A stretch of 64,000 nt of DNA from Macrostomum lignano (Eukaryota), in assembly GCA_002269645.1 (NCBI GenBank), contig NIVC01003415.1, positions 1 to 64,000 of the forward strand, written 5' to 3'. The notes below the pieces were generated by a model, which saw only the letters and a program-made list of their open reading frames with translations, did not search any database and was not told the origin of the DNA. Below are positions 26,007 to 64,000 of the stretch, in pieces; position 1 is the first letter of the stretch, and every line of letters starts with the position of its first letter. The position numbers and the translations under genes are program-made.

Positions 26007-28306
26007 TCAGGTGAAGCTGACCCAGTTATTTCCCATACCCGTAGCCGCAGAGCCAATCGGAAACGAGGCCGGCCGTGAAGCTCCGGTCCCGTAGCGACTC
26101 AAAATCTGAGCTTTGAGAGGCGAGCTGAACTGCAACAGGTCCGTCTCGGAACTGCTCTCTGGTGCCGGTGCTGGTCTCGAGTCGCCGATTAGAGCTGACC
26201 AATCCTCGATGCTGTCAGTCTGCGCCTGCTGGGGCCGCAAAGGCAAAGTCGATGGAGGCGACACGAAATGGACGTGGGCGGGGCCGCCAATGCTGTGCGA
26301 AGACGAGGCAGCCGAGTGCAGCGAAGCGGCATCATTATTGTTGCTGCCGCTGTCCGAGTCGTCGATGTTTATCAGTACACCTTCACCGCTGCCCTCGCCA
26401 ACGTCATCGCCGACTCCGCTGTTCAGCATGACGGTTGGAGCCAAACTATCGTTCAGAGACTTAACTACTTCATCGGCTTCTTCAAAGCCTTCTTCAGCTT
26501 CGTCTTCTTCAGCATCATCATCGCTTTCTAATTTCTCTCCGATTAGCTCCGGTTTCTGTGGAAGCTGCTGAGCAGCCGAATGGGCCGAAGCCAACCGTCT
26601 GGAGAGCAGGTTAGAGCGCACCCTGCGACCAATGTTGCGCGGCAGGTTGACGATGGCTCGCTTGCGCTGGCGGCTCGCCAACAGCCGATCGGCGGCCCGA
26701 TTGAACGCTTCGTAATGAGACTCGGATGTGCCGGCGGCTAGGTAGCGGTCGACGAACTCGCGGAACAGCTGCGAGCCGGACAGGCGGCGCAGGAACGCCC
26801 GGTGCGACTCAGGACTGGCGGCTAGGAAGGCGTCCAGGTTGAAATCCGAGCCGGCCGGCTGCTGTCGAATCGGCGCCAGCAGTTCCACGGTGACTCGGAG
26901 CAGGGCCTGGGAAAAGGCGTCGCCTGGGGCGCTGGAGGACCGAGAGCGGCTTAGAGAACGCTTGGCGGCGCGCACGAGTCCTTAGGAAATGAATGTGTGT
27001 AGATACTGACTGTTAAGAAAGAGGCTTACGTGGAATCTGGGAAGCTAGTCTTAGAATCGGGGATGGCGGCGGAGGCGCAGCAATTAAGGATTGGGGGGGG
27101 AAGGATGGAAGTGGTTCAGCAACTGAGGATCTGGGAGGGTGGCGAGATGCGGTCACAAAGAATGACCGTTTCAGACAGTAAAAGCTAAAGGACTCACTCT
27201 TGGGTAGCCCGAGCTGCTCAGCAGAGGCCTCAGCGCCATCAGCCACAAACAGATCTCCGCTATCCAGATTGACCAGAGCAAAATCTCGGTCGGCAAAATT
27301 GGCGTCAACTTTGGCCCGGTTAGTAACGTAGAGAGCCTCAACTAAGCCGAAAACGAAGGGCACAAGGCAGCCGATGTGGTCAATGTTGGCAGCGGAGAGG
27401 CTGGGCGCGAACACGTGCTCCCAGCTGAACGGGTACAGCATAGAAACGCAGCCGAAGGCGCACAGAGTCAAGCGATCCAAGCGTCTTTAAAAAACGCGAT
27501 GGAAATAATTTATGGAAACGATACGAGACATGAGTACGATACGAGTATGCAGCTGCACCATCTAGCTCAGTAGGAAGCTCGAGGACTAATATCCCTGTTG
27601 GAGGATAATAAGACTAGCATATTTACCTGGCAACCAGAAGCAGTTTTCGCTCAGTAAGCATAGCGGTCAGCAGGTACAGCAAGGTGTCCGAACTGCGGCC
27701 AAGCCGGTCGGACAGTTCACGCACCGGACCCCACCGGCCAGTGTCCGGCAACTGGCTGTCCCGGTGTCCGGTCGGCTGTCCCATGGTGGCCGAGGCGGCC
27801 AGTTGCTGAGAAATGGCCAGCACCGGGTCGACCGGCCACTGGCTGCTGAGCTGTCGCAGCAAGGCCGGAAAGATGTCGAACCCTGGCCGTCTAGTGACCA
27901 ACGCCAAGCACTCGACGATGCAGTCCGCCTCTACATGCAGTCGGGTGAACACAGCAAACAAGAAGGTGAACCGAGAGTTGATGTCGGTGAAGGCAGTGCA
28001 GAGGGTGTCACCATCCTCAGGCTGCCAGTCGGAGCCGCGGCTGTCGCAGCAGTCTGGCAGCGCGTATTCAACAACTCGAATACGCCAGTCGTCCACGGCG
28101 GAAAAGGCCGCCACAACGGAGGTTGGACCGCCGCATAGGCGTCGGCGCAGACGGTAGAGAGCCTCAAATGCTGAAGCGCAGGATTCTGGCGGCAGTAGCC
28201 GACTGTGAATGCCCTGCTTCATCGGACTAGCAGACTTTGCTGTCCCAGCTGATGCCGCTGCGGGAGGCAAGCAACCAAACAGGTTTAGCACAGCTGGCAT
28301 ACGCAT
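26007..28306 (-). CDS. DENN-domain protein (Rab GEF; connecdenn/DENND1-like), 3 exons
   Basis: Exons 28306-27627 (phase 2), 27484-27198 (phase 1) and 26980-26007. Motifs: LLTAMLTERKLLLVAR, SMLYPFSWEHVFAPSL, VPFVFGL and SQLFREFV (cDENN/dDENN). The C-terminus ends WVSFT*. Confidence 0.88.
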
Positions 28307-32365: not shown

Positions 32366-34747
32366 TCACGCGGAACTGAGCAGAGACGCGAAGCGCGCAC
32401 CCTTTTGCACGTAGATATTCGAATAGGGGCCGTCATTCTGCTGCATCTCAACGCCGCGCACCTTGCACAGAGTTAGCAGAGTGTAGAATTTGGCGGCTGC
32501 CGCTTTTCGCCCGTTGCCGATAGTGAGCTCAGACACGGTGCACGGCTCGGCGGCTGACCGGCCTTCCAGGCGCAGCTGTAGAACCTTCAGCATGGCCGCC
32601 CCGCGTCGTTCGGTGCGCGCCTCCTCAGTGGCCTCTTCAACATCCTCGCAAGTGATCTGGCGGTCAAGATCCTCTTCGGCAGACAGGCCGGTGGGGTTGA
32701 AAACGCTAGGCGGGCCGCCAACTTGGTCAACAATGTCAGTGTCGCCGTGGTGGAAGGGGAACGGCGTGTGGACGCTGCCGTGCAGCGGCACGGAGGCCGG
32801 GATGAGCGGCTGGTCAGCCGGAGCGGAGGAGGCGATAAGCGGGTCCGTGTTGGTGCTGATGAGGCCGTGGCTAAGCTCCTCACGGATCGGTGTCATGGCG
32901 ACGCTCTCGTGATGCTGATGTTGGTGATGATGCGGCGTCTCGCTAGTGATGAGCTCTTGAAGGTCGCGCATGTCAGCGTCCTCGTCTTCGGCGGCGGCGG
33001 CGGCAGCAGCAGCCGCAGCGTCGGCACCGCTGGCGGCCGGGCGGGTGCGCGCGTTCTGAGCAAAGAGGCGCAGCAGGCGGTCGCTGAGGTGGAGGCGGGC
33101 CGTGTGCGACAAAAGCCGGTCAACGCTGCCGGTCTCCTTCCACTGCATGAGCTTCTTAGTTGGCGGGGCCAAGTCCAGCACAGTGACGATCTCGGACGTG
33201 TCCTGCATGTGAGCCTTCATCAGCTCGGACGGGATCGATTTCTGGTCGTCAATAATGAGGCGACGCCGGCGTGCCCGACGAGCGGTCACGTGGCTGCGCA
33301 CGCTGGGCTCGGATGGGCCGCTGGCTCCTTGCTGGTGATGCTGACCGGCCTGCTGGTGCTGCTGGTGCTGATGGCTGCCGACAGCCGACGCAGATGAAAT
33401 GTCCGGCAGCGGCGGCAGGGCGTACCGGGACTCCTGCTCGCCAAGGACGCTGCTAGGAGCCGTTGGCTGAGGCTGAGGCTGCAGGTCGATTTCGGACAGC
33501 ACGTTCTCGAAGTGCCGCTTAGTGGTCAGATCGTCGAATAGGTCGGTTGGCTCGAAGTCGCCACCGAAGCCGTCCTCGTCGTCGTCGTCGTCGCCGGCGG
33601 GGCCGGCCAGCAGGCCGATTTCGTCGGCGGCGTTCTCCATGTCCACCAGGGTGCTGTCCTGGTGCTGCTGGTTGGAGTGCCGGCCGCGGCCGATGCTGCC
33701 GATGTCGTCAGCCTGGCCGGTGCTGTTGGCGCCCTGCCAGTTGTCAAAGGCGGTGCGGATTAGCGAATAGAACAATGGATCAGTCAGGACTACGGATGGG
33801 GAATTTGGGGAACTCCTGGATACTGATTGCTGGGGCTTATAGCAGAGGCCACGTCTTCTTTCCAGGGGTCAGAGGGCGGTTCCTAATGGGGTCAAATAGC
33901 GGTTCCTAATGGGGTCAAATGGCGGTTTCTAATGGGGTCAGAGGGCGGTTCCCAATGGGGTCAGAGGGTGATTACTAATGGGATCAGATTGTGTTTCCTA
34001 ATGGAGTCAGAGGGCGGTTCCTAATGGGGTCAGAGGGCGGTTCCTAATGGGGTCAGGGGGCGGTTCGTAATGGGGTCAGAGGGCGGCGGTTCATGCTTTG
34101 AGAAGATAGGAGCAATGAAGAAGCCAATCGGAAATAAAGAAGCAGAACTGTCAAATTGAGTGCCAAAACAGTTTGCCCCACCAAAGCTTCAAATAAAGTA
34201 CCTGAGAGTACAGGCTCTCTGCGCCGGCGTCTCGCATAGTTTCCAGGGCGGCCTCGCCGAAATCGTCGTCAGGCCGGCCCAGATTGATCTCGGCCTCGCC
34301 GGCGTCCAGCTCCTTCATGGTGATGTCCTCGGGCCGGCTGGTATGCACCACCGGCACGCTGAGCTGGTCGGCAATGTGGGTCAGATCCTCGGACTCGAAG
34401 TCCTGCAGATTGTCTGGCAGGGTGATGGCGGCGGCGGCAGCCTCTCGACTCTTTTCTGGCAGGTCGACGGCGCCCGGCCGGAAGGCCATCTTGATCTTCA
34501 CGTAGGCCTCGTTACAGTCGGCCAGGAGGTACTTGGCCTTGCGATTGTAGATTTTCACAACGCCAAGCAGCAGATGGCCGGATGTGCGCAGAGCCATTTT
34601 CACCTTGGGCTCGAGGATGGCCTCAACGCTAGACGAGATGTTAGTCTCAAACACGTGAGCCTTGGTGAGCTTTTTGTCCCAGTGGGCGGCCAGCCAGATT
34701 TTGGCCAGCGGGCCCTTCTTGGTCAGCACGAAATGCGCGTAGAACAT
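32366..34747 (-). CDS. RAD21: Cohesin kleisin subunit RAD21/Scc1 (about 637 aa), 2 coding exons
   Basis: Exon 1 is 34747-34202 and starts [37 protein letters not shown] (canonical N-terminus). Exon 2 is 33733-32366, joined in phase 0, with [16 protein letters not shown] and the winged-helix end [14 protein letters not shown]. Confidence 0.97.
33870..34085. repeat. 23-bp minisatellite (GGGCGGTTCCTAATGGGGTCAGA) in the RAD21 intron
   Basis: About 9 imperfect tandem copies. Confidence 0.9.
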
Positions 34748-35509
34748 GGCGGCGCCGACTCAATGAAGCTGCAAGTGGGCGATTTTTAAAGGCGTTTTAG
34801 AGCTGCCAATAGTGATGAAAAAAGTAAATAAATGAAAGAAATCAAGTTCCTGAGCTAGCTTTCTTGCTAGAACCATGGTCACAGTATTGCAAGCACACTC
34901 CTAAGTGTCAGCGCAATTAATAAGTTGCCTGAAGTTGGTTTCATTGTCCAAGCTAGCTAATCTCATGCTATATGTTATGACCAACCCTGGAGACCAATTT
35001 GTTGCCACTATCAATGAGGTTGCAATTTACTAGTCATTTTATTATTACCCTAGGTTTATAACCTAGTAGGATAGGAGGAGACCTATGCCTTTTTTACTTT
35101 GCTTTGCAATACAGTGTTATAGGTAAAAGGATGCATATATAGCTTTTGCATATATAGCTTATGTTTCCATAGGGTACTACTATTTTTTACCCTCAGTCTA
35201 AGGCAATGTAGTATACTATTAGTAAGGTAGTTAATAAGTTAGTTCACAAATAAGGTAGTAAGTTAGAAAAAAGGAAAAACACTAGTAAACTTCATATCTC
35301 ATATTTTGTACTCTAACTCTAATACACTGATAATGCCATGGTATTAGCAATGCCATTCAGAATCAGACCAGCAAGAGACAAGCACTGAGATGTTGATCTT
35401 GACAATAATAACATTTTTGAGTCACAAGCAATTAATGAAGCAAGTATTATTTCAAAGAAAACTTTTAAAGAAAGAGTCTTCTCAATAACTTTCTTGAAAA
35501 AATAAGAAA

Positions 35510-43057: not shown

Positions 43058-45291
43058 TAAGTAGGCCTAACTAAAAAACATTTATATAAATAGCTAATAC
43101 TATGCACCTAGCTATAGTATAGAAAGATATATATACAACTGAAATTTCTATTGTATACTGAGACTGAGACTAGCTATTGTACATATTATTAATAGATCAT
43201 TCATTTTTGCAAGGGCCCTTTGTTGTAGGCCCAAGCTAATATTTATGACAATACAGTATGAGAAAAAATAAAATAACATACTTAACAAAAGCTATTTTAC
43301 TAGGCTTATTAGCAATATCAATCTAAGTAAAAACCTAACCAAGGCCTAACATTTCGTTATTTGTATTTCTGGGCCTGTGTTGTGAAGTATTTTTACCACG
43401 TAAAAAAAAGCTAAATCATTTTGATGAAAACACCCTTGATGATGTGTCACACAGCTGCATAATGTTGCGTGTAAAAAAATAGTTCGATTAGTTTTTGGCC
43501 CGTCGAAGACAAACTAGACAAAGTCGTCAAAAATCAAAATAATCGATAATTTTTCTTTTACAAAATATATTTCATTTTCTAAAAAACTGTGAATTAAAAA
43601 TACTCTGGTCAAAAACGTATTAAGGTACGCACTTAAACACACACTTAGAATTTCAATCGTATTTTTTAGTACTATTAGCATTGTTGAAAATATTTTGAGC
43701 ATAAAAAATATAGTTGCAGTTAGACAGGTGTAAAACATGACAAAAAAGTTGTGGCTTGGGCAACTTTTTTTAAATACAAGGAAATGCGTAGCATTTTTTC
43801 CCGAGTTCGAGTCTCAAAGTAGAGGATAATATATAAATAAACTATCTTAATCTCACTGTCACTGGCTTACTGCCCAGTGATAAAAAAACGGAGATGAAAT
43901 TACAAATTCTTTTTTTGGCAATATAATATTAAGTATTAGGCCCTACTCACAGTATCGCTTTAAATTCGTCAGTTTGTTAGTTATTTTATTTATGATAGAC
44001 AAAGACTGATAGTTAAAATTGAAATGATGGATGGATCGGATGCGGGATGTCGAATTACTGAATTTTTGCTTTAAACTTTGACCCTTTTAGATTAAGATCA
44101 AAATGTTAGTAGTTTTGTTTCTTTTACATTTAATTAAAATATTTTCATTTTTTAACTAGTTAAAACATTATAATATTTTTTTAAATTTTAGTCTCTAGTG
44201 GTAGTAGTACTAGCAGTACAGTAGTAGTAGCAGTAGTTAGGCCTAGGATTGGCTTAGTAAAAACACAAAACAGCCTGGTTAGCCTATATAAAAATTATAT
44301 TTAAGTATTTTTAGAAGTAATAAAAGTTAGTAATACAAATGGATATTTTCTATTAATTATTATTGCATTTGCAATTGTTTTATAATAGCATTTATATAAA
44401 AATTTAGATTTTGAGACAAATAAGTATGATTAGCAGTAAAAAATGAAATTTAGTAAGGTAAAATCTATCAATATCAGTTTGCTTTTCATTTATAGTTAAA
44501 AAATAAAAAAGTAAATTAATATTATGAGACTATCAAGATAATATTAAAAAGACAACTAATACAATATAATTTTTTATAAAATCATATATATATATATGAT
44601 TATGATTTTAATAGTAGCACAAATTAATAATGCATGGAAATAATGCTAATTTTATATTAATATATCAATGCCTTATGAAATTTTGATGTTTGCATAAAAT
44701 AAAAATATGAAGTAATAAAATTGTAATTATAAGTATAAATTATTATTATATGTATATTGAATATAAAAAGCAACATAAGCCAAGAATAGCACAAAATTTA
44801 ATGGGTTGCAGAATATAAGAAAGAATACAAAAAATGTGTAGCCAATAGTAGTTATAAGCAACAAATAAAAAAGAAAAAAGAAGAAGTCTATATTAGAGGT
44901 CAATAGTTTAAAATATTTAGCTTTGAGCATATTGCAAATTATTTAAAAGTTTAAACACTTGAAGTTCAAACTTTTAAACTATGAATGGCAGTTGTATTGA
45001 TTATAGTGTTCTGTTATTCTAGATTAAGTCAATTGCTCCTAAGCTCAAAGTGACTATAAAAATATTATATATTTATAGTGACCTATTCCTAATATGAGAA
45101 ATAAAAATAATGCAAAAACCAAATATTTTATAGCTAGTGCAAAAAGTTCTGCATTGTAAAATAAATATAAGTCGATTGTCTTGGATCTTAGCAAGGTCCT
45201 AGTTTAGTGGGTATAGAAAAGCTTTATTCTTTATCCTCTGTGTAGTCCAGTACCCATAGACTGCCAGGCCGCCACAACCTTTGCATGTCTA

Positions 45292-48200
45292 ATGGCCGAA
45301 GTCGCGGTCGGCATTGACATTTCCTCCGGTGGCGAGGCTCGCAAGAAGAAGCGCTCATCAAGACGGGCCGAGGCTGGCGATGAGGCCGGCGAGAGGCGGC
45401 ACCGGCGGAAGAAGTCCACCCAGCAGCCCGGCGACGCCGATGGAGGCGGCGATGGCGATGGTGAGCGGCGCAAGAAGAAGAAGAAAAACAGAGAGGACGA
45501 GACGCCCGAGGAAAAAGAAGAGCGAAGGCGTCGACGAAGGGAGAAGAAGCAGGCGAAGGCGGAGGCGGAGGCGGCTGCTGCCGCCGCTGCTGCTGCAGCC
45601 GCGGCTGGCGTGGCGCCGACTGCGGACGAAAGCGATGAAGATGTGGAAGCCAATTTTCAACCTGCCGCTCGCCCACCGCCCCCGCCTGTACCGCAGCAGC
45701 GGGCTCCGGCGGCTGCCTCCGACACTGCATCGGACGAGGATGCCAGAGGATTCGACGAGGAGCCACCGAGGCGTCAGCAGCCGCCGCCGCCGCCTGCACC
45801 GAAGCCGAAACCAAAGCCGAAGCCGGCAGCCAGGCCGCAAGTTCCGCCGCCGGCGTCCCCGTCGCCGCCGCCGCCCCCTCCGCCGCCACCGCCGCAACCC
45901 CAGCAGCAGTTCTACCCGGCTGAGAGCGACGAGGACGATGTTGAAGCTCACGATGCCAGGGTGGCAACTCCGCCGCCGCCGACGCCTCCGCCGCCTCCGC
46001 CTACGTCGGACCCGCGAGCGCAGCAAGCCGACAGCGAGGCGGATGAGGACGACCAGGATGACGACCAGTTCCGACCGCCGCAGTGGAACCGGCCGAGCAC
46101 TCCGACGCCCCCGACCACGCCTCCGCCACCGCCGACAACGACGAAACCGGCGCTGCCGAATCCGGCCAACCCGACCGACCTGCATCGCTATATTGCCGCT
46201 ACCCTGGATGACGAGGGCAGCGACGTCGGCGGGATGGAGCCGGAACCGCCAGCACGCCAGCCGCAGCACCAACAGCAGCCACCATACCAGCAGCAACCAT
46301 ACCAGCAGCAGCCGCAGCAGCCGCCGTACCAGCAGCAGCCTCCAGTATCTCCCGATGCTGAGTTCGATCGGCCCGACCGGCCGATATCGGCGTTTGGCGG
46401 CGGCGGCGGCGTGCCCGGCGACCGCCAATCGGCTGCGCTGTCGTTATCGCGCGGCGAGGATCCGAACATGGAGCAGCCGCCGATTCCGGAGGGCAAAAAG
46501 CCGGGCGGCGGCCTCCTGGGCCGACTGTTTGCCTCGTTTCGTCGGGGCGGCTCCACGAAGCGCAAAGGCTCCACCGCCTCAGCTAAGAAGGCTCCGGGCA
46601 CGGCGATGGCATCACCGGGGGCTGGCGGAGCTCCTTCTACATCGGCGGAATCGGCCGGTCTAGGCGAGCACGACAGGTGGAATTCGAACCCGGGACTATT
46701 CAACGCCAACGACACGCCGGGCAATACGTTTGACCAGAGATTGCAGCAGCCGCCTCAGCAGCCCGTGGCGCTCAGACAGCCAGTACCAGGTGTGAGACCC
46801 CTGGCTGACACTGAGGTTCGTGTCATTCTGCTGGACGGCGAAGAAATTGGCGTGCCAATACCGCGCAAAGCTACTGGCAGCGAGCTGATGGCTCGCGTCT
46901 GTGAGCACATCGACCTACAGGAGATTGATTACTTTGGTCTAACCTACGTCGACGGAAAAGAACGCATGTGGTTCTGGTTGGACTGCGAGAAGCGAGTTCT
47001 GAAACAACTGAAGCACTGCGAGAATCGCATGCTCAATTTCCAGGTAAGTCTGTCTTCATAACTGCTGATTTTTAATTTAACTATGTTTCTGTTTCTACTT
47101 ATGTAAGTAGGCTACCGCGAACATGAGTTTAAAAATCTACCACGTAGAGTTGTGGTAGTGAGGCTCTCTACGTGCTCTCTAGTAAAAATTCCTTTAAATT
47201 CGGCTCTGGGTTTTGTCCGGAAAAGCTCATTTTTATTAAAAGACAACATTTGCTTCTTTCAACCTTAATATATGATTCACATTCACTTATTCAGAATACA
47301 TTTTTTACAAAAAAATTAATGAAATTGTAGCAATTTTTCTTTTGCGTCTTTAATTTCTACACAGTCTTGCTTTGGTTTTTTGCTCATGTCTCGAATCCAC
47401 TTGACATGCGTGTATTGGTAATCACTCGAAATTTTCCAGTAAAAATGCAGTTTAACTTGGCTTTAAAATTATTATTATACTTCAAATTTTTCCATGCGAT
47501 TGCCAACTTGATTGTTCCTGCGTTGATTTGTTCGGTTTTTCCAGCTTGATAAAAGATACTTGCTGCTAAAAGTGTTAAGAGTGCGAGAGTGGCACGTTGC
47601 TGCTGTAAAAGCTGAAGAATATGTTGTGGTCGTGAGCCTTCGAGGCTCTTTAAACTGAAACCTTTAGTTAGACTGTCTCTCCTAGTCATATTCCTACATC
47701 TTCGCTTGTACTCAACACCCACTAGGTGAAGTTCTACCCGCCGGAGCCCAACATGCTAATGACTGACGTGACACGCTATCAGCTGTGTCTGCAGGTTAGA
47801 CAGGACATCTACACAGGCAAGCTGCCCTGCACCTGGGTAACTCAAGCTCTGCTCGGCTCGTTCCAAGTTCAATCAGAGCTCGGTGACTTTGACCAAGCTG
47901 AACACGGTGACATCGGCACGCTTGACTATCTGCAGAACTTCGAATTCGTGCACAACCAGACTCCGGAGCTTGTGAATAAGATTGCCGAGCTGCACCGCGG
48001 GCACAAGGGCATCACGCCCGAGGTCGCCGACCTGCGCTACTTGGAGACTGCCCGCCGGCTGGAGTTCTACGGAGTCGACCTACACCCGGCCCGGGATCTG
48101 GACGATGTTGACATCACTATCGGGGTGTGCTTCGGCGGCGTGCTGGTGTACAAAGACCGCATGCGAATTTCGCGCTTCGCTTGGCCAAAAATTTTGCGCA

Positions 48201-48962
48201 TCTCCTACAGGAAGAACCTCTTCTACTTGAAGATCCGATCCGACCTGTATGAGAATGTCGAGGCTGTGGTCGGCTTCAAGATGATGAACCACCGGTGGGT
48301 TTTCCTTACAGATTCCAAATTCAGATTCTCTATGGTTCAAATGAGCATCAATAGCAGCCCTCGAGTTTTAGCTCCCACAGATCCTCGCATTCCGAATATC
48401 GAATCCCTAAATATCCATAAAAAGTCCTTAAAAGCCACAAGCTGAATCACAGATTTAGCTCGCAGAGAGCCACAATGCCAAGCTCCAGTCACTATCAATC
48501 GATAAGCTTGTCAATTCGTGTCTCCCACCCCGCAGCTGGGCCAAGCGCCTATGGAAGATCGCCATCGAGAACCACTCGTTCTTCCGCCTAAAAGAGGTGC
48601 AGATGGAGAAGTCCAGCAGCAAGCTGTCGCTGAACTTCATCCGCGGTAGCAGCAGCCACCGCTTCTCGGGCCGCACAATGCACCAGTACCGCGCCGAGGG
48701 CGGCACCATGCGCCAGTCGGGGACCTTCGATCGGTCGCTCAGCAAGCGAATGTCGGCCAGCCTGCCCAGCCTGAAGGGCTCGCAGTACGGCTCCTTTCAC
48801 AGCCTCAACCGGCTGCACCCAAGAGACATGCGACCGCAGGCTAGCGGTGGCGGCGGCGGCGGCGGCGGCCGCGCCAGCATGCAGGGACCGCCGAGAACAG
48901 CCGGCCGGACCGCCAGTGTCAGCGTGCTTCCAACGGCTGCATTTAGTCGCGACAGGCCGTCT
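45292..48962 (+). CDS. EPB41: Band 4.1/coracle-family FERM + FERM-adjacent protein with a long acidic/Pro-rich N-terminus
   Basis: Exons 45292-47043 (phase 0), 47726-48294 (phase 2) and 48536-48962 (phase 0). Motifs: VILLDG, LQEIDYFGL, FQVKFYPPEP, TRYQLCLQVRQDI, YGVDLHPA, HRWAKRLWKIAIENHSFFRL and HRFSGRT. Probable further exons are 49436-49470 and one starting at a TTGCAG|T acceptor (49789 or 50647). Confidence 0.92.
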
Positions 48963-49079
48963 GTGAGTTGCTTGAGAACTGCTAATTCACCTATTGGGGA
49001 TCATCGACTCCCTGAGGGTTTTTATTCCATAGCTTAGGCTTTCATATTCATATTAATAGAGATTTTATGCCCATGCGAT

Positions 49080-49781: not shown

Positions 49782-50659
49782 ATTGCAGTGGAAAATTCCA
49801 TTGATAAGTTGCAGTGGAAAATTCCATTGATAAGTTGCAGTGGAAAATTCCATTGATAAGTTGCAGTGGAAAATTCCATTGATAAGTTGCAGTGGAAAAT
49901 TCCATTGATAAGTTGCAGTGGAAAATTCCATTGATAAGTTGCAGTGGAAAATTCCATTGATAAGTTGCAGTGGAAAATTCCATTGATAAGTTGCAGTGGA
50001 AAATTCCATTGATAAGTTGCAGTGGAAAATTCCATTGATAAGTTGCAGTGGAAAATTCCATTGATAAGTTGCAGTGGAAAATTCCATTGATAAGTTGCAG
50101 TGGAAAATTCCATTGATAAGTTGCAGTGGAAAATTCCATTGATAAGTTGCAGTGGAAAATTCCATTGATAAGTTGCAGTGGAAAATTCCATTGATAAGTT
50201 GCAGTGGAAAATTCCATTGATAAGTTGCAGTGGAAAATTCCATTGATATGTTGCAGTGGAAAATTCCATTGATAAGTTGCAGTGGAAAATTCCATTGATA
50301 AGTTGCAGTGGAAAATTCCATTGATAAGTTGCAGTGGAAAATTCCATTGATAAGTTGCAGTGGAAAATTCCATTGATAAGTTGCAGTGGAAAATTCCATT
50401 GATAAGTTGCAGTGGAAAATTCCATTGATAAGTTGCAGTGGAAAATTCCATTGATAAGTTGCAGTGGAAAATTCCATTGATAAGTTGCAGTGGAAAATTC
50501 CATTGATAAGTTGCAGTGGAAAATTCCATTGATAAGTTGCAGTGGAAAATTCCATTGATAAGTTGCAGTGGAAAATTCCATTGATAAGTTGCAGTGGAAA
50601 ATTCCATTGATAAGTTGCAGTGGAAAATTCCATTGATAAGTTGCAGTGGAAAATTCCAT
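49782..50659. repeat. 26-bp minisatellite (TTGATAAGTTGCAGTGGAAAATTCCA), about 33 near-perfect copies
   Basis: Only one visible substitution (ATATGTTG near 50248). Confidence 0.98.
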
Positions 50660-53244: not shown

Positions 53245-54705
53245 TTACGGCATGCGCGACTGCATCATCGGCGTGCTGCTGTTGTTCTCGGCGATGAAGT
53301 CGGCGATGTAGCGAACTCTTGGCTGATGCTGCTGCGGCTGCTGAGACTGCGAAGACTGGTGCGGCAGCGGCCATTCGCCGGAAGCCAGACACGCGGAATT
53401 CTGATGGCTGAAAGGCGCTAAAAACGATGCAGCTGGCGCCAAATTGGAAGGACTCGCTGTGGAAAATTCCGGCGTTGGCGGACTGGCAAACATTCCTGGT
53501 TGCTGGTGCAGATAGCTGCTGCCGGGAGGCTGAGGATTCTGGAACGATGTCGAACCGTAGTAGGAAAAATACGACTGCGGCTGCTGCTGCTGCTGCTGCA
53601 GATGCTGATGGTGTTGCTGGTAGTGCTGCTGCAGTTGCATTGGACTTTTAGGACTCTGGAAGTACGATGGCCCTGAAGCTGCTGCGGCAGCGGCTGCGGC
53701 AGCGGCGGAAGCAGCGGAGCTGGCAATGAAATCGTGGGGCCCGTAGTCCACCTTGCGCACGCGGCGGTCCTTGGCCCGTCGGTTTTTAAACCAGATCTGG
53801 AGATTGCATGGTTTGATGATTGAACATTGCTTTCATGGAAATCCTTCTGATTCCTGATCACTCTAAAACGTCTTTATTGAAGGTCTTGAATCTGACATCC
53901 CAATCAGACTCCATGGCAAGCACTGGATTCACAAGGTAGACATTGATCCTGATCACTTGTTGAGCTCAACTCTCTAATCTCCTCTGATCTCCGTTTCATT
54001 ACTCCCTCTCTCTGACCTCTCATATCTGACCTTAGCTTTGGTTTCCAACTACTGATAACCCTTGTTTGATTGAACCCTCCACCTCTTTTGCAAGCTACTC
54101 TTTTTCACTTTTCCTTCTAATCAAATAAAATATCAGACTCAAACTCCCATCTCGCAGAATTTAAATTTACTGTCAATCCTGAGCTTTAAACATTTAAACT
54201 GATTGCTTCGATCGGCTTACCCTCTCTGAACATTCCCACTTTTCCGGCCTCTCCTTGTCTGATAACTTCCACGTTGTCGCAAAACCACCATTTAACCCGA
54301 ATCTGTCTTGCCCCCGATTCCAATACTCCATCCTATACTTTTATTGCTTAAAACTATTATAAGTAATAACAAGACGTAATAAATAAACTAAAGCTGTTTT
54401 ATCAAGGTGCACGAATAGTCACGTACCAACACCTTCCTGTAGGGAATGCCAATCGTTCTGCTAAGCAACTCCAACTCTCGATAATCGGGGTACTTTTGCA
54501 ACTCAAACATGCGCTCAAGTTCACGCCTCTGTACAGCCGTGAGATTGGCCCTTCGTCTCGGTAGCGTTGCCTTTGGCGTCTCTTGCAGTGCCAGTACAGG
54601 CGCAGACGCAGTGGCAGATGTCGATGCAACCGAACTAGAAGCTGGTGCAGCATCAGCATAGTGGAATGGACGGTTGAATTCCACAAAACTTGGAGTGCCT
54701 TCCAT
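53245..54705 (-). CDS. Divergent PRD-class K50 homeobox protein (about 276 aa), 2 exons
   Basis: Exon 1 is 54705-54427 (donor GTACGT) and exon 2 is 53796-53245 (acceptor CTCCAG), joined in phase 0. Spliced homeodomain: RRRANLTAVQRRELERMFELQKYPDYRELELLSRTIGIPYRKVL|IWFKNRRAKDRR. The C-terminus is poly-Ala/Gln rich. Confidence 0.88.
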
Positions 54706-55326
54706 CACTGATTTTATCGGAAATAGAGTCTTTTCTGATTTAATATTTGTATTTGTTGCAGCCAACTCAGTCCAAGGAGTCCATTTCTACCTAGCCTCCA
54801 ATGCAGTCAGTTCATTTTATATTACTGTACAAAACTATTGTCGATCGCTATCGACCTCGCTATCGTTGCATCAGGCCATCAGCCAATCAGGGGAGCGGTT
54901 GGGGGGGTAGAAAATATAATTGCTACGATTGCCCACCCCATTTCCGCGGCCACTGTATTATTCAGTACGCGTGTATAAAGTACATTGCAATATTGGGGGG
55001 TGGCAAATTAGGCTCGCGCAATACCACAAAATGTACATGCACGATTGAGTTCAAAGGGCCTGTCAACTTAAGCTCATAAAGTGGAGCCTGAGTAACCTAT
55101 GTACACAAATGCTACGTCATTCTGCTCACGGTGACACTAGGAAGCTGGGTTTGGCAAAAAACGACAAATCGAGCATATTGGACTTGGATAGCCGGATAGG
55201 GGAGGAGAAGCATGGGAATAATTATGGACTCGACTTTATGAGCTTAAGTTGACAGGCCTTTTAAAACTGAGCCTTAAAGTGTAACTCGATGGGTGGGTGA
55301 TACGTTTTCATTGTTGTTGCGACAAT

Positions 55327-56652: not shown

Positions 56653-59600
56653 ATGGCTGCTAACATGTACCGCGTCGGAGGTAAGAGCCTCATTTCTTTA
56701 TACACGCTTACTAACCCAGGTTTTTGCGTTCTATTGAATCTGTTAGCACAATTTCATATTAGTAAAGTTTCAAGCACAAGTTTAGGAGTTTCCTGCTCTT
56801 GTTTCTGATAGATATTCTATAATCTACCTTTTATTTAAAAAATACACTTCAAATCATTGGATTTTTCTCATCTGATGAGCGCACGTAGAGAGCCTCAAAG
56901 TCTACCCTTTCAGCTTTTTTTGCCCTGCTTCAGCGCTACGACGGAGCAAAACGAGTGCCAGGCTAGATAGAATAGGCTTAATGCTGCAAGGTGTTAGTTG
57001 AGAATGAGAAGAATATGTTAGACTAACCTTAAGAACTCTTGGCAGATAATAGGATTTATTTATTCACCCTAGGCTAAATATTTTTAAAATAGTCTCACTC
57101 ACAAAATGATTTAGGAGTCAAAGGCCTATCTACATATCTCTAGAACCTATGGCCTATGCCTATGGGTATGGGCTATGGCCATGCCTTAGATAAATAGAAC
57201 CTGCTGTATATGATAGCTAAATTTTAAAGTGTTAAAAATACTATTTATATTAGACCTATACATTTTTATAAAAATTAGAGAGCCTAATAAAACTATAGAT
57301 ATTAAGTTAAGATGTTGGTATTTAAAGGCCTAGATATTTAGGCCTAATAAAAATTAGGCCTATGCATATGATGGTAAAAGTCTAGGTTTATTTTTTGTAT
57401 AGCTACGAATGCAAACTAAAATTAAAATTAAAATATTAAAATATAATATGCCTATTAGACCTTATAAAGTTATATACAATTTTGTAACCTAACCTATTAG
57501 TATTATGGCTATTAGGCCTCAAGCTAAGGCTAAATTTGAAAAAAATATATTGATATAATATTTCAGTGAATTATAAATTAGGTCTAAAAGTAAGACTAAA
57601 AGGCAAATAGGTAATTTATATAAATAATTAGAGGCAATTAGGTAATTTTAAAGTAATTTTATCCTTTTTGATAAGTAGAAATCTTAATTAAAGTCTGTTT
57701 TTATAATATAATCCTTTTTTAAAGATGGCTTATACCTTTCAACCCTTAGGAATATAGGTGCATAGTTGGGATTCATGTTGTAGGGGGAAGATATTAATAT
57801 ATTTCCTATGTTAGCAATAAAAGCAAAATACAAAAGCAAAAAAAGTTCCCCCTTTCAAGGGCCCAGGGAGGCATGTCTTTAGCGTCCCCCCTATGGCTAT
57901 ATGTATGAATAAAGAATATCCTAAACAAAAGCTATAATCAAAGATTTATATACTATAATTTATATACTATAAGTTAGGCTAAAAGAATCTTTTTTTATAA
58001 AAATTTCAAATTCTATTGGTTGCTTTCTATAGTTATTTATCACTTTTTTAATGTAAGAATAATCAATGAAGGCTTTCTGTATTTTTTAGAAGTTATAAAC
58101 CAGTGCAAATTTTGCTAAAATTGTACATAACTCTTTATCTTCAACTCTTCATCCTCTTCATAATACCAAATCCCAAAGGCCAAAATCTGCTTTCTATATA
58201 TACCTAACAAAAAACATTGTTTCTTATAACCTAGCTCATGATAAGCCTATCACAGTCTACAAAACTTCCTTAAAATAAATCTTTTTAGCTCCATATTTTA
58301 TATAATTCAAATGGATTTAAAGTAATTCTTTTATATTGGGATTCTTGGGATTTTAAGACTTAATCCATGGTAAATTTTGAGTTATCTGTAAATATGGAGT
58401 CTGCAAAGGCTTAGATTTGACTGAGATTAAGAACTCTTGAGAAGTCAAAGGCCCAACAATGTAAAGGGTATGGTTAGTATTTTATTTGGTTATAAACTTT
58501 TGACTAATGCTAGCTAGCATCCCGATTTTTGATTTGGCTTTTTAGCCAACTTTAGAATTTGGACCTAGGATGCCAAATGACACTGCGACTCTGATTCTTG
58601 AATAAAATATCCAAGTGGTCACTGCTTCCTGAATTTTAAATATAGCGTTTTTAAATACAAGCAATGCCTGCAATGCACAGTCACCAATTGATATGCAGAA
58701 GCAACACCATTCAATTGCAGACTATGTGTACTTCGAGACCTCAGCCTCCGGACCATATCAGATTCGGCGTATCGAGGAGCTTACAAAGACCCCAACTGGC
58801 AATGTGGAAGCTAAGGTTATGTGCTTCTTTAGGCGGCGCGACATTTCTAATAATCTCATTAGCCAAGCTGACAAGCATCTGAGTAAGCGGCGTTGCTTTT
58901 CATTTTTTTTCGACTATCCTATCATTTCATTTAGATCAGAAAATGTAGAGAAACTGCAACAGGAATAGTAGAGAGCCTCATTTTGCCTATTTTAACCCTC
59001 TTGGGTCTATCTGAATGCTGTGTACTCCGGAATAAAGGTAGTAAACGTAGAGAGCCTCATCGTAGCGCCCGAGTGCGTGTGTTAGAGAAAAATTCGCATT
59101 AGACGAGATTTCGATTTTCGTCCAGCGCTGATGGGAAACTCCGATTGAATGGGAAAGTTTCAGCAGCTAGCGAAAGCAATTATTCCTGCTCCAAAAAAAG
59201 AACTGGCTTGTCAAAAGATGAGACAGACTGCTCCAAAGAAAGAACTGGCTTGTCAAGAGATACAGACAGCCTGTCATAGACAAACTGTGAGAAGAGACAG
59301 ACGATCCACAGCCGACTTGTTTATTTTATCGTAATTTCGCACGGTTCAAAATCCAGCTTAAGGCTGGTTAATCTCGCTGGACCCTGTCAGTGAGACTGGC
59401 AAATAGGTAAAGAGACTGGCAAACAGACAGTGAGACTGGCAAATAGACAAGGTGAGACTGACAATTGACAAATAGACAGTGAGCCTGGCAAATACGCTGT
59501 GTGAGACTGGTAAATAGACAGTGAGACTGGCAAACACACAGTGAGACTGGCAAATAGACAGTGAAACTGGCAAATCGACAGTGTGAGACTGGCAAACTGT

Positions 59601-62600
59601 GAGACTGGCAAACACACAGTGAGACTGGCAAATAGGCAGTGAGACTGGCAGGCAATCACATTAAACCTCGACCGACTGAATGACAGCAGACGAAAGCACC
59701 TCTCGGGGAGCATCTCTCCGCCAGAAAAGCTTCCTACAGACGAGCCGTGCCTAATAGTCTTCCCTCCTCCCCTAGGCCTGGATGATGAGCCATCGGCAGC
59801 TGGCGAAGCCGAGGCGGCCAGCTCCGAGCCCAGGGGCGGAGGCCTCACGGAAGTTCAGCGGCACCAGCTGCGCCATCGAGAGCTGTTCCTATCCCGCCAG
59901 GTGGAGACCCTACCGGCCACAACCATCCGGGGAAAGTGCGCCGTGACCCTGCTGAACGAGACCGAGGCCCTGACCTCCTATCTGGCCAGGGACGACGCCT
60001 TTTATTACACCCTGACCTACGACACCGCGCAGAAGAGTTTACTGGCCGATCGCGGCGAAATCCGGGTCGGCGGCCGCTACCAGGCCGAGGTTCAACCGTT
60101 GCTAGGCGACGGAGAATCCGACGGCCGCGACCTGGCCCAGCTGGAGGAGCTGGTCTGGCGGCCAGATCACGGCCTGTCCGATGCCGACATTGACAAGTAC
60201 CTGCTGGTGGCTCGGTCGGTAGGCTGCCTGGCCCGAGCTGTGGACGCCTGCAGCTCGGTGCGTCAGCCCGGACTGGCGGCTGCTGCGGCCGCGGCTAGTC
60301 GCGACTACACCCAGGTTTGTGGCCGGCTTACTTGGGCTTCCGGCGCTCTAGAGATATGAAATTCAATAAATAGGGATTTGGGTCCTCGGAACATTAATAT
60401 TTCGGGATCTAGGATGCGAGGAATCACTGGGATTCGGAAATTAAGATTCAATAGGGGATTCCGGGATTAGAATTCGAGATCTGGGGTTCGGGGATTAGGA
60501 TTCGGAACCTGGGATTCGGGATCTGAGATTTGGGATTAGGATTCGGAACCTGGGATTCGGGATCTAAGATTTGGGATTAGGATTCGGAACCTGGGATTAG
60601 GGGATTTGAGATTTGGGATTAGGATTTGGAACCTGGGATTCGGAACCTGGGATTCGGGATCTGAGATTTGGGATTAGGATTCGGGATTAGGGATTAAAAT
60701 TCGGGATTTGGGATTAGGATTCGGATTCTGAGATTAGGATTCGGGATCTGGGATTAAGGGATTAGGATTCGGGATCTGGGGTTCGGGATTTTGATTCGGG
60801 ATCTGGGATAAGGGAATTAGGATTCGGAATCCGAGACTTGAAGAAGAGGCTTGGTAAGTTCGTAGTTTTAGATTAGCATCCCTGTATTTGTTAGTGACTT
60901 TAGGACTTCTACAGCACAAAAGCATCAAACCGCCTCAAACTCGGCATTTCCAGGCCCACGCCTACCGAATGCTGCACTCGTCCAAGTACGATCTGGGCCG
61001 GGCCTTCTGCCGGCTGGTGACCGACTCTGGGCCCGTGCTGTGCCGCGACCAGCTGGAGGACTGGTCAGCTAGCGAGTGCAACCTGTTCGAGGAGGCCATG
61101 AACAAGTTCGGCAAGGACTTTAACGAAATTCGGCGCGACTATCTTTCTTGGAAATCTATGCGCTCGATAGTGGAGTACTTCTACATGTGGAAGACTACGG
61201 ATAGATACGTGCAGCAGAAGCGCTTGAAGGCCTCGGAAGCTGAGAAGAAACTGAAGCAGGTTTGTTTGTTTACTTTTAGTTTTTTGGCATTAAAATGCTT
61301 CAACTATTCAGTCGGCGCCAATTCTATTTATCTTTTGGCGTGAATTCTACCCAGCAAGAACCCCATCCCCAGGTGTACATTCCCAACTACACGAAGCCCA
61401 ACTCCGATCCCCAGATGTACATTCCCGACTACACGAAGCCCAACCCCATCCCCAGGTGTACATTCCCAACTACACGAAGCCCAACCCCATCCCCAGGTGT
61501 ACATTCCCAACTACACGAAGCCCAACCCCCATCCCCAGGTGTACATTCCCAACTACACGAAGCCCAACCCCATCCCCAGGTGTATATTCCCAACTGCACA
61601 AAGCCCAACCCCCATCCCCAGGTGTGCATTCCCAACTACACGAAGCCCAACCCCCATCCCCAGGTGTACATTCCCAACTGCACAAAGCCCAACCCCATCC
61701 CCAGGTGTGCATTCCCAACTGCACAAAGCCCAACCCCATCCCCAGGTGTGCATTCCCAACTACACGAAGCCCAACCCCCATCCCCAGGTGTACATTCCCA
61801 ACTACACGAAGCCCAACCCCCATCCCCAGGTGTACATTCCCAACTACACGAAGCCCAACCCCATCCCCAGGTGTATATTCCCAACTGCACAAAGCCCAAC
61901 CCCCATCCCCAGGTGTGCATTCCCAACTACACGAAGCCCAACCCCCATCCCCAGGTGTACATTCCCAACTGCACAAAGCCCAACCCCATCCCCAGGTGTA
62001 CATTCCCAACTGCACAAAGCCCAACCCCCATCCCCAGGTGTGCATTCCCAACTACACGAAGCCCAACCCCCATCCCCAGGTGTACATTCCCAACTGCACA
62101 AAGCCCAACCCCATCCCCAGGTGTGCATTCCCAACTGCACAAAGCCCAACCCCATCCCCAGGTGTGCATTCCCAACTACACGAAGCCCAACCCCCATCCC
62201 CAGGTGTACATTCCCAACTACACGAAGCCCAACCCCCATCCCCAGGTGTACATTCCCAACTGCACAAAGCCCAACCCCCATCCCCAGGTGTGCATTCCCA
62301 ACTACACGAAGCCCAACCCCCATCCCCAGGTGTGCATTCCCAACTGCACAAAGCCCAACCCCATCCCCAGGTGTACATTCCCAACTACACGAAGCCCAAC
62401 TCCCATCCCCAGGTGTACATTCCCAACTGCACGAAGCCCAACCCCCATCCCCAGGTGTACATTCCCAACTGCACAAAGCCCAACTCCCATCCCCAGGTGT
62501 ACATTCCCAACTGCACGAAGCCCAACCCCATCCCCAGGTGTACATTCCCAACTACACGAAGCCCAACCCCATCCCCAGGTGTACATTCCCAACTACACGA

Positions 62601-64000
62601 AGCCCAACCCCATCCCCAGGTGTACATTCCCAACTACACGAAGCCCAACCCCCATCCCCAGGTGTACATTCCCAACTACACGAAGCCCAACCCCATCCCC
62701 AGGTGTATATTCCCAACTGCACAAAGCCCAACCCCCATCCCCAGGTGTGCATTCCCAACTACACGAAGCCCAACCCCCATCCCCAGGTGTACATTCCCAA
62801 CTGCACAAAGCCCAACCCCATCCCCAGGTGTGCATTCCCAACTGCACAAAGCCCAACCCCATCCCCAGGTGTGCATTCCCAACTACACGAAGCCCAACCC
62901 CCATCCCCAGGTGTACATTCCCAACTACACGAAGCCCAACCCCCATCCCCAGGTGTACATTCCCAACTACACGAAGCCCAACCCCATCCCCAGGTGTATA
63001 TTCCCAACTGCACAAAGCCCAACCCCCATCCCCAGGTGTGCATTCCCAACTACACGAAGCCCAACCCCCATCCCCAGGTGTACATTCCCAACTGCACAAA
63101 GCCCAACCCCATCCCCAGGTGTACATTCCCAACTGCACAAAGCCCAACCCCCATCCCCAGGTGTGCATTCCCAACTACACGAAGCCCAACCCCCATCCCC
63201 AGGTGTACATTCCCAACTGCACAAAGCCCAACCCCATCCCCAGGTGTGCATTCCCAACTGCACAAAGCCCAACCCCATCCCCAGGTGTGCATTCCCAACT
63301 ACACGAAGCCCAACCCCCATCCCCAGGTGTACATTCCCAACTACACGAAGCCCAACCCCATCCCCAGGTGTACATTCCCAACTGCACAAAGCCCAACCCC
63401 ATCCCCAGGTGTGCATTCCCAACTACACGAAGCCCAACCCCATCCCCAGGTGTGCATTCCCAACTGCACAAAGCCCAACCCCATCCCCAGGTGTACATTC
63501 CCAACTACACGAAGCCCAACTCCCATCCCCAGGTGTACATTCCCAACTGCACGAAGCCCAACCCCATCCCCAGGTGTACATTCCCAACTGCACAAAGCCC
63601 AACTCCCATCCCCAGGTGTACATTCCCAACTGCACGAAGCCCAACCCCATCCCCAGGTGTACATTCCCAACTACACGAAGCCCAACCCCATCCCCAGGTG
63701 TACATTCCCAACTACACGAAGCCAACCCCATCCCCAGGTGTACATTCCCAACTACACGAAGCCCAACCCCATCCCCAGGTGTACATTCCCAACTGCACGA
63801 AGCCCAACCCCCTTCTCCAGGTGTACATTCCCAACTGCACGAAGCCCAACCCCCTTCTCCAGGTGTACATTCCCAACTATACGAAGCCAAATCCCGGCGT
63901 GCTGTACAATCGGCCGGAGCTGCCGGGCTCCAGCCGCTGCTGCGAGAGCTGCTCAGGCACTGCCACCTCCAACGGTCAGTGGTTCGCCTGGGGCCCCCCG
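56653..64000 (+). CDS. MTA1: Metastasis-associated (MTA1/2/3) family NuRD subunit (BAH-ELM2-SANT-GATA), 3'-partial
   Basis: Exons 56653-56680 (MAANMYRVG), 58721-58882, 59776-60314, 60954-61259 and 63863->64000, with phases 1, 1, 0, 0. Motifs: [79 protein letters not shown] and CESC...WFAWGPP. Confidence 0.97.
59385..59650. repeat. ~20-bp minisatellite (GTGAGACTGGCAAATAGACA) in MTA intron 2
   Basis: About 12 imperfect copies. Confidence 0.9.
60400..60830. repeat. GGGATT-based degenerate array in MTA intron 3
   Basis: Repeated GGGATTAGGATTCGGAACCT and GGGATTCGGGATCT units. Confidence 0.88.
61355..63895 (+). repeat. 41/42-bp minisatellite made of 3' splice site + first 10 codons of the next MTA exon, about 60 copies
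   Basis: Unit CCCCATCCCCAG|GTGTACATTCCCAACTACACGAAGCCCAAC. The last copy continues into the GATA-finger coding sequence. Confidence 0.97.

Follow-up and report, generated by a model that had tools for sequence, protein, structure and literature searches.

How is a single 3' splice site chosen when some sixty near copies of it lie directly upstream? The question is raised by the last intron of an MTA-family gene in the flatworm Macrostomum lignano, within the 64,000-nt stretch analysed here (assembly GCA_002269645.1, contig NIVC01003415.1, positions 1 to 64,000 of the forward strand; hereafter the window), which takes up 64 kb at the start of a 98,985-bp contig (C3415). An initial annotation, made from the letters alone, had described this intron as filled with about 60 copies of its own acceptor and of the codons that follow it, and had left two options, precise selection of the distal acceptor among decoys or a source of isoforms variable in length and frame. 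We consider it probable that the array is a non-coding intronic minisatellite of the type known in amphioxus as a 'mirage', lying in the last intron of the MTA paralog A copy on this contig, and that its decoys are removed with the intron. The array is a fast-evolving one, and it adds a new phylum to a class that has already been described.

We refer to the gene copies on three contigs, C3415, C666 and C708, as paralog A, and to those on C1177, C353 and C997 as paralog B. The exons of the window copy that are needed here are as follows.

58721 to 58882, plus strand: MTA-A coding exon, BAH region; acceptor ttgcag|, donor |GTAAGC (tblastn of GenBank protein P0121, Pfam BAH).
59776 to 60314, plus strand: MTA-A coding exon, end of BAH and ELM2; acceptor cccctag|, donor CAG|GTTTGT (tblastn, Pfam).
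60954 to 61259, plus strand: MTA-A SANT exon ending ...EKKLKQ; donor CAG|GTTTGT at 61260.
63863 to 64000, plus strand: start of the last coding exon, with the GATA-type finger; it extends past the window to a stop at contig 65108-65110.

The predicted domain order, BAH-ELM2-SANT-GATA-type finger, places the host gene in the MTA family of NuRD subunits. BAH and ELM2 score above the Pfam cut-offs and Myb/SANT and MTA_R1 just under them; the Pfam GATA model gives no score on the host protein, and the CX2C...CX2C finger is visible directly in the last exon. The best homologues carry MTA1/MTA3 annotations in many phyla, with E values down to 1e-90, and the nearest named proteins are MTA3-like proteins of M. 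lignano. The sequence KLKQ|VYIPNY(N/T)KPNP is near-invariant among 128 MTA homologues, which bears out the earlier identification of the exon half of the repeat unit as the conserved MTA segment following KLKQ. Past the finger there is also a C2H2-like motif, RCPVVDCDKEFRLRPQLVRHAASAH, at residues ~195-220 of a 517-aa composite (last exon, contig 63863-65110); its Pfam zf-C2H2 match is under the cut-off (E=0.009), and PF00096 is likewise seen on some deuterostome MTA homologues.

The intron between the SANT exon and the last exon is made up of the following elements.

61260 to 61372, plus strand: unique 5' part of the last intron, 113 nt, 96-98% identical among the three A copies.
3' edge of 61260 to 61372, plus strand: end of the unique intron, ...CAAGAACCCC ATCCCCAG, with the upstream copy of the AACCC(C) microhomology; the AG at 61371-61372 is the first decoy acceptor.
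61373 to 63862, plus strand: 'mirage' minisatellite, 60 units of 40-42 nt (Tandem Repeats Finder and unit parsing).
61428 to 62236, plus strand: first copy of an 809-nt perfect internal duplicate, lag 1123 nt.
62551 to 63359, plus strand: second copy of the 809-nt perfect internal duplicate, lag 1123 nt.
63779 to 63862, plus strand: last two units, ending CCCCCTTCTCCAG and containing the decoy at -42.

Tandem Repeats Finder (TRF) reports an array at 61359-63895, well inside the contig and not at its end, with a period of 41/42, 61.1 copies and 94% matches. When split at its CAG|GTG junctions the array resolves into 60 intronic units at 61373-63862, with the real exon at 63863 standing as a 61st 'unit'. 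The unit lengths are 42 nt (n=31), 41 nt (n=28) and 40 nt (n=1), summing to 2490 nt, and 17 sequence types are represented. Each unit combines the first ~30 nt of the last exon (GTG TAC ATT CCC AAC TAC ACG AAG CCC AAC) with an acceptor tract of ~12 nt ending in CAG; the consensus is an exon start GTGTACATTCCCAACT(A/G)CAC(G/A)AAGCCCAAC followed by a tract C(C)CCATCCCCAG, with a base composition of 19 C, 12 A, 6 T and 5 G. Both the copy number given in the initial annotation and its view of a tandem duplication that took in the 3' splice site between the SANT and GATA exons are thus confirmed, and its statement that every copy carries CAG|GT holds for 59 of the 60 decoy junctions, failing at one that reads CAG|AT (61414|61415). 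The donor-like half of the AG|GT junctions is GTGTAC in 37 units, GTGTGC in 18 and GTGTAT in 4. The decoys use the codons TAC, CCC and AAC where the true A exon has TAT, CCA and AAT, all of these differences being synonymous. The array length of 2490 nt equals 830 codons, which puts the first decoy acceptor in frame; in all, 24 of the 60 decoys keep the frame, and the other 36, on translation, would run into a stop after 65-82 codons of the last exon, with loss of the GATA-type finger.

The GenBank proteins for all three A copies (P0121; P0001 from C666, 418,831 bp; P0122 from C708, 465,452 bp) are 745 aa each and join KLKQ straight to the start of the last exon, and P0121, which derives from the 98,985-bp contig, matches the window exons residue for residue. 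The annotation behind them combines RNA-seq, processed by StringTie and TACO, with a de novo transcriptome. This RNA-guided annotation of three copies fits use of the distal acceptor, 63863, in the main product, and so fits the first of the two options, distal selection among some 60 decoys.

What distinguishes the distal acceptor is less simple than had been proposed. The stronger tract pointed out in the initial annotation is indeed confined to the last two copies of the window array, as only the units at 63779-63862 end CCCCCTTCTCCAG, but the idea that a CCCCTTCTCCAG tract marks the true site did not survive comparison with the other A copies. At C708 the true acceptor is preceded by ...AACCCCATCCCCAG / ...CCCAACCCCATCCCCAG, which is the ordinary decoy type, and at C666 by ...ACTTACATCCCCAG / ...AACTTACATCCCCAG, again decoy-like, and tracts of the CTTCTCC type occur inside the C708 array. 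We therefore reject a stronger polypyrimidine tract as the mark of the true site. The decoy acceptor at 63820|63821 (-42, in frame, adding 14 aa if used) shares with the true site all 42 nt upstream and 16 nt downstream, and since the two are identical from -42 to +16 the upstream sequence cannot be the discriminator. For reference, ...GAGAAGAAACTGAAGCAG precedes the donor of the SANT exon, the true junction goes on as GTGTACATTCCCAACTATACGAAGCCAAATCCCGG and the -42 decoy as ...AACTGCACGAAGCCCAACCCCCTTCTCCAGGTG. An RNA structure that loops out the decoys was also considered and rejected, as shuffled versions of a 300-nt piece of the array fold just as well (z = +1.03). The features that are constant among the A copies are the downstream sequence of the real exon and its place as the last AG|G before it.

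A search of the genome (764,410,778 bases in 5269 contigs) with the SANT exon 60954-61259 found six copies, those on C3415, C666 and C708 at 99-100% identity and those on C1177, C353 and C997 at 77-78%. All three A copies have an array at this intron, and its 5' edge coincides in all of them; its existence is thereby corroborated by two independent contigs.

C3415 (window): intron of 2603 nt, 60 decoy units; 59 of 60 junctions CAG|GT, stop-free.
C666: intron of 1220 nt, 19 decoy units; 16 junctions CATATG (neither AG nor GT), 293-nt insertion inside the array.
C708: intron of 651 nt, 14 decoy units; some units truncated to 29 nt, TAA/TGA stops in each frame.

The C666 intron, like that of C708, has stops in all frames. 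The unique flanks are 96-99% identical among the A copies, except that the figure is 94-96% for an 880-nt block upstream that includes a different tandem array. Unit identity is 0.945 within arrays (C3415) versus 0.85-0.90 between them, and two arrays have only 0-2 unit types in common; the higher identity within than between arrays and the scarcity of common types therefore suggest rapid turnover with concerted evolution. From their sequences, the three contigs appear to be either alleles or recent duplicates.

In paralog B, on all three contigs, the homologous intron has one acceptor only and contains a GATA/GATT microsatellite, and the exon start matches the decoy consensus, TAC..CCC AAC. 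Since B has one acceptor and all A copies share the array, the array arose on the A side, later than the A/B split but earlier than the separation of the three A copies. Three further features of paralog B were noted: the repeat that stands in place of the mirage after the SANT exon is a long GATA/GATT/GACA microsatellite; the acceptor is AAG| and not CAG| in two of the three copies; and two database models place the start of the last exon 24 nt downstream (KLKQ|PNPAVLYNRQD), lacking VYIPNYTK.

The insertion in the C666 array is a miniature inverted-repeat transposable element (MITE) of 293 nt (C666:330168-330460, minus strand) with a 14-bp terminal inverted repeat, CATACATGCGCAAC, and an 8-bp target duplication, TGTACATT. 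At least 3084 first-look candidates are present genome-wide, and all 40 scored copies are approximately full length (39 span 1-293 and one 2-293) with 94-100% identity, for which reason the element has probably been active recently. The junction hexamers of the arrays, CAGGTG in the window, CAGATG in some units and CATATG in most C666 units, all conform to the E-box CANNTG, and the series CAGGTG, CAGATG, CATATG marks a loss in two steps, GT first and AG second.

The array is open in all three plus-strand frames, with no TAA, TAG or TGA between 61344 and 64000, as had been reported. The openness had been taken to hint at variable coding isoforms, and this part of the argument fails. When units of this composition are shuffled, 34% have no stop in any circular frame, and stop triplets are likewise absent from 38% of the 44-nt windows of the MTA exons nearby; the stop-freeness is unremarkable because a homogeneous young array inherits the property from its unit. 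The sister copies, moreover, have acquired stops, junctions without AG and the MITE. A hidden coding repeat is rejected: the 28 units of 41 nt and the one of 40 nt scramble the frame, C708 and C666 are interrupted in all frames, and with a 300-aa array translation as query no carrier of the repeat peptide was found among 1.84 billion representative proteins. That search gave 19 weak matches (best E 1.9e-10), and the three inspected (P0130-P0132) are translations of tandem repeats with no relation to the array. We also reject the view that the unit is a piece of a transposon or a dispersed satellite, as a genome search with six units matched MTA loci only.

A plausible origin can be read from the edges of the array. 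An AACCC(C) microhomology is present at 61359-61364 and at each unit end (...AAGCCC AACCC(C)), the unique intron ending ...CAAG AACCCC ATCCCCAG|. The ancestral junction would have been ...AACCCC ATCCCCAG|GTGTACATTCCCAACTACACGAAGCCC AACCC..., in which two AACCC(C) motifs 41 nt apart flank one unit, and slippage or unequal exchange between these motifs may have duplicated the 41/42-nt segment across the 3' splice site. The synonymous changes TAT/CCA/AAT in the true A exon also remove the 3' microhomology. Further unequal exchange, with blocks of 3, 7 and 27 units, then led by growth and turnover to 60, 19 and 14 decoys and to unit variants peculiar to each array, as array structure and the comparison of alleles show. 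The mRNA presumably joins KLKQ to the most distal acceptor, as the RNA-guided annotation indicates, and the decoys would leave with the intron; the distal choice would rest either on the downstream context of the real exon or on its position. The array is probably tolerated and not selected, in a genome that is 15-39% tandem repeat, and because there are six MTA copies, selection against occasional mis-splicing in one of them is probably weak.

Several points weigh against a non-coding array whose decoys are always discarded. Exclusive use of 63863 lacks a local-sequence explanation in the window copy, given the identity of the -42 site. The GenBank annotation dropped repeat-overlapping transcripts, and alternative transcripts with identical coding sequence, so that minor isoforms using decoys could exist unseen. 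Two UniRef models, P0124 and P0002 (listed with no accession or name), carry exactly one extra 14-aa unit: that of P0124, VYIPNCKKSNLHPQ, corresponds to the -42 acceptor of C666, and that of P0002 is of a type with which the C708 array begins. Finally, the 809-nt perfect duplicate may result from misassembly, in which case ~33 units would remain.

The first three of these points would equally favour an appreciable use of decoys, in which the in-frame sites at -42 and -84 would give insertions of 14 or 28 aa between the SANT domain and the GATA finger and out-of-frame sites would cost the finger; as this is the last intron, transcripts of the latter kind are not expected to trigger exon-junction-dependent nonsense-mediated decay. 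The absence of intervening stops ahead of the in-frame decoys is also in keeping with it. We nevertheless regard it as unlikely. The distal site is used in all three RNA-guided GenBank coding sequences, the sister arrays have lost AG, gained stops and taken up a MITE, so that the coding or splicing capacity of the decoys is not conserved, and the representative protein library holds no repeat-bearing protein. P0124 and P0002 presumably come from the older ML2 assembly via WormBase ParaSite (a source contig for P0002 was looked for and is not on record), and their extra unit may stem from an array that was collapsed or from an ab initio choice. Aberrant mRNAs do not result from mirages in amphioxus (PMC3087553, PMC3902484).

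Could the array be real but its size an artefact? In that case the 1123-nt duplication, or part of the 41/42 pattern, would stem from mis-joined or mis-polished PacBio reads. An internal higher-order repeat is evident, in that two copies of an 18-unit block match perfectly over 809 nt at an offset of 1123 nt, and additional periodicities of 83, 125 and 291 nt are seen; whether the copy number is 60 or ~33 depends on this block duplication being real. The 41/42 difference falls in a C homopolymer, a typical site of long-read error, and the assembly was made with Canu from early PacBio data. On the other hand, the order of 41- and 42-nt lengths is identical in the two 18-unit blocks, an agreement not to be expected of random errors, and this argues for a real length pattern and against homopolymer noise. 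Assemblers tend to collapse arrays and rarely expand them, 2.6 kb is well inside read length, and separate arrays stand on two other contigs. We judge an artefact of size to be quite improbable.

Recursive splice sites (ratchet points), known from long Drosophila and vertebrate introns, have a 3' splice site adjoining a regenerated 5' splice site (AG|GT), and a self-correcting scheme of this type can be imagined for MTA: ligation to a decoy would recreate CAG|GTGT(A/G)C, which would be re-spliced onward until the last copy is reached, so that the mRNA stays constant. Such a scheme would explain correct output without any feature marking the distal site, AG|GT is present at 59 of the 60 decoy junctions, and the 18 GTGTGC units match the donor consensus at +1, +2 and +5 as well as the gene's own GTTTGT donors, which are used twice. 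Most units, however, read GTGTAC, with no G at +5, as does the start of the real exon, where a further round of splicing would have to be avoided; in C666 most junctions have neither AG nor GT, at no apparent cost. Recursive sites are single, conserved and strong (GTAAGT) in introns of tens of kilobases, whereas here there are 60 hypervariable and weak GTGTAC copies in a 2.6-kb intron, the donor half varies (GTGTAC/GTGTGC/GTGTAT), the junction is not conserved (CATATG in C666) and the intron ranges over 0.65-2.6 kb. We find this scheme very improbable.

Barely credible is a functional element regulating MTA through ~60 E-boxes (CAGGTG; CATATG in C666), through a template strand prone to G-quadruplexes or through a C-rich RNA that binds protein, since, although the CAGGTG, CAGATG and CATATG junctions are all CANNTG and the minus strand has ~4 G-runs per unit and 58 relaxed G-quadruplex motifs, copy number and unit sequence vary wildly among co-resident copies, the other paralog has no array, the RNA shows no excess of structure over shuffled versions (z = +1.0), the CAGGTG hexamer is nothing but the splice junction and there is no canonical short-loop G-quadruplex.

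Several systems already described invite comparison with the MTA array. According to two reports (PMC3087553, PMC3902484), amphioxus mirages are minisatellites that span intron-exon boundaries and vary between haplotypes; they undergo concerted evolution from which the edge unit is excluded, often contain AG/GT signals and, as reverse transcription PCR showed, leave normal splicing undisturbed, and new introns have been suggested to arise from them. Germline or somatic instability of length is reported for amphioxus Adh3. The MTA array has the structural marks of this class, namely head-to-tail repeats, a unit of intron plus exon, an authentic boundary at the end of the array and an unstable length. 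The likeness extends to a unit that spans the intron-exon boundary with its splice signal, to an authentic boundary at the array edge, to copy numbers that differ between haplotypes (in MTA, between alleles or recent duplicates) and to concerted evolution. The differences are that the amphioxus cases belong to Cephalochordata and ours to Platyhelminthes, that an MTA/NuRD gene is a new host, and that the copy number is 60 against 3 and 6 in two BflGb6 haplotypes, the sole amphioxus counts in the text consulted. Correct splicing was demonstrated there by reverse transcription PCR and is deduced for the MTA array from annotation. A further difference is that in MTA one co-resident copy (C666) has lost AG|GT at most junctions and taken up a MITE.

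A second parallel is human F7, in which intron 7 contains a 37-bp variable number tandem repeat (VNTR) whose first unit spans the exon 7 donor, the identical pseudo-donors being silent (PMC1557585). As in the MTA array, the units repeat an authentic splice site and only the site adjoining the real exon is used, although in F7 it is the 5' splice site that is repeated and the most upstream one that is used, and in MTA the 3' splice site and the most downstream one. The closer analogue of F7 is a donor-side array in an SLC7-like gene of M. lignano, described below. In the Rogers model, as cited in PMC3087553, introns are gained by tandem duplication of an exon segment containing AGGT; the MTA array resembles this in that tandem duplication makes extra AG|GT junctions within a gene. 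Because the duplicated segment already held an acceptor, however, the existing intron was lengthened, and there is no new intron in any of the three copies. The link to intron gain made in the initial annotation is sound, and had already been drawn for such arrays in PMC3087553. Ordinary intronic VNTRs of M. lignano are similar to the MTA array in period range, copy number, homogeneity and abundance; what sets the MTA array apart is that it was seeded across an exon boundary and so holds a conserved coding fragment and a splice signal. A literature search for Macrostomum and minisatellite gave nothing relevant, and we found no report of such arrays in Macrostomum.

We then asked how common such arrays might be in this genome. 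According to the assembly paper, the Mlig_3_7 assembly of the DV1 line comprises 764 Mb in 5270 scaffolds, built with Canu from PacBio reads; simple and tandem repeats make up 15%, and 180 Mb lies in blocks at least 95% identical, a redundancy attributed to extra large chromosomes. By the sum of TRF rows ~22% of the window is tandem array, and in a 200-kb sample of contig C1 the figure is 39%, in 151 arrays. Within this sample, the 427-nt intron of an SLC7-type amino-acid permease gene (C1:1085568-1085994; sample 85568-85994) contains 11 copies of a 35-nt unit, GATTACAGATGATTACAG|GTAGAA..., which repeats the last ~13 nt of the exon together with its donor (ACAG|GTAGAA). The exons when joined give one continuous AA_permease_2 match, residues 1-309 to profile 77-377, and the array, judged by its sequence, is a donor-side mirage. 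A second case in 200 kb suggests that the MTA array is a by-product of a genome-wide tendency, a single such case being too few for a rate. A broader claim, that boundary-spanning minisatellites are pervasive in M. lignano and that the species follows an unusual splice-site rule, such as iterative re-splicing or strict dependence on the downstream exon, seems to us distinctly unlikely.

Other arrays in the sample abut exons without spanning them (29868, 60148, 91843 and 95326, next to long open reading frames), and a 20-nt AGGTSA array at 86494-86770 of the sample adjoins an SLC7-like exon with an ambiguous boundary status. In the window, a 23-nt array in a Rad21 intron (33865-34086) was considered as boundary-spanning and rejected, as it ends before the exon. 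Unrelated minisatellites lie in other MTA-A introns (window 59388-59650 and 60427-60831) and just 3' of the MTA-A stop (contig 65322-65701 and 66254-67451), with units of 20/40-nt GAGACTGGCAAATAGACA..., GGGATT-type, 21-nt and 22-nt kinds; none of these four spans an exon boundary. Many units in the window and in C1 are G-rich on one strand (GGATTGG, GGGATTCGG, GGTGGGGTGGG...). The window also contains a 26-nt array of 34 copies at 49783-50659 and a 4.35-kb minisatellite at 8048-12402 (35-nt unit, 124.7 copies, 96% matches), which is open in several minus-strand frames for more than 1000 codons, a homogeneous array mimicking a long open reading frame.

The neighbours of MTA-A in the window are as follows.

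2881 to 7130, plus strand: Ig-domain protein (Pfam).
20340 to 21731, minus strand: weak KH match (Pfam).
26007 to 26981, minus strand: dDENN-domain protein (Pfam).
32366 to 34759, minus strand: Rad21/Rec8 cohesin subunit, its N and C domains split by the intron with the 23-nt array.
45217 to 49037, plus strand: FERM-domain protein (Pfam).
53245 to 54786, minus strand: homeodomain protein (Pfam).

Sixty near-identical 3' splice sites upstream of the one used amount to a natural stress test of 3' splice-site selection, with first-AG scanning, first-come-first-served co-transcriptional choice and exon definition as the rules at stake. The 60 AG|GT decoys, the 19 mostly AG-less units and the 14 mixed units in one animal form a built-in allelic series, from which allele-specific RNA-seq could read the effect of decoys without engineering, and working transgenesis is established in M. 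lignano. Such arrays may also mislead gene predictors, two database proteins having a spurious or minor extra unit. The MTA array extends mirages from cephalochordates to a flatworm, and together the MTA and SLC7-like cases suggest that mirages arise wherever minisatellite formation is rampant, which bears on the movement of intron-exon boundaries and on duplication models of intron gain.

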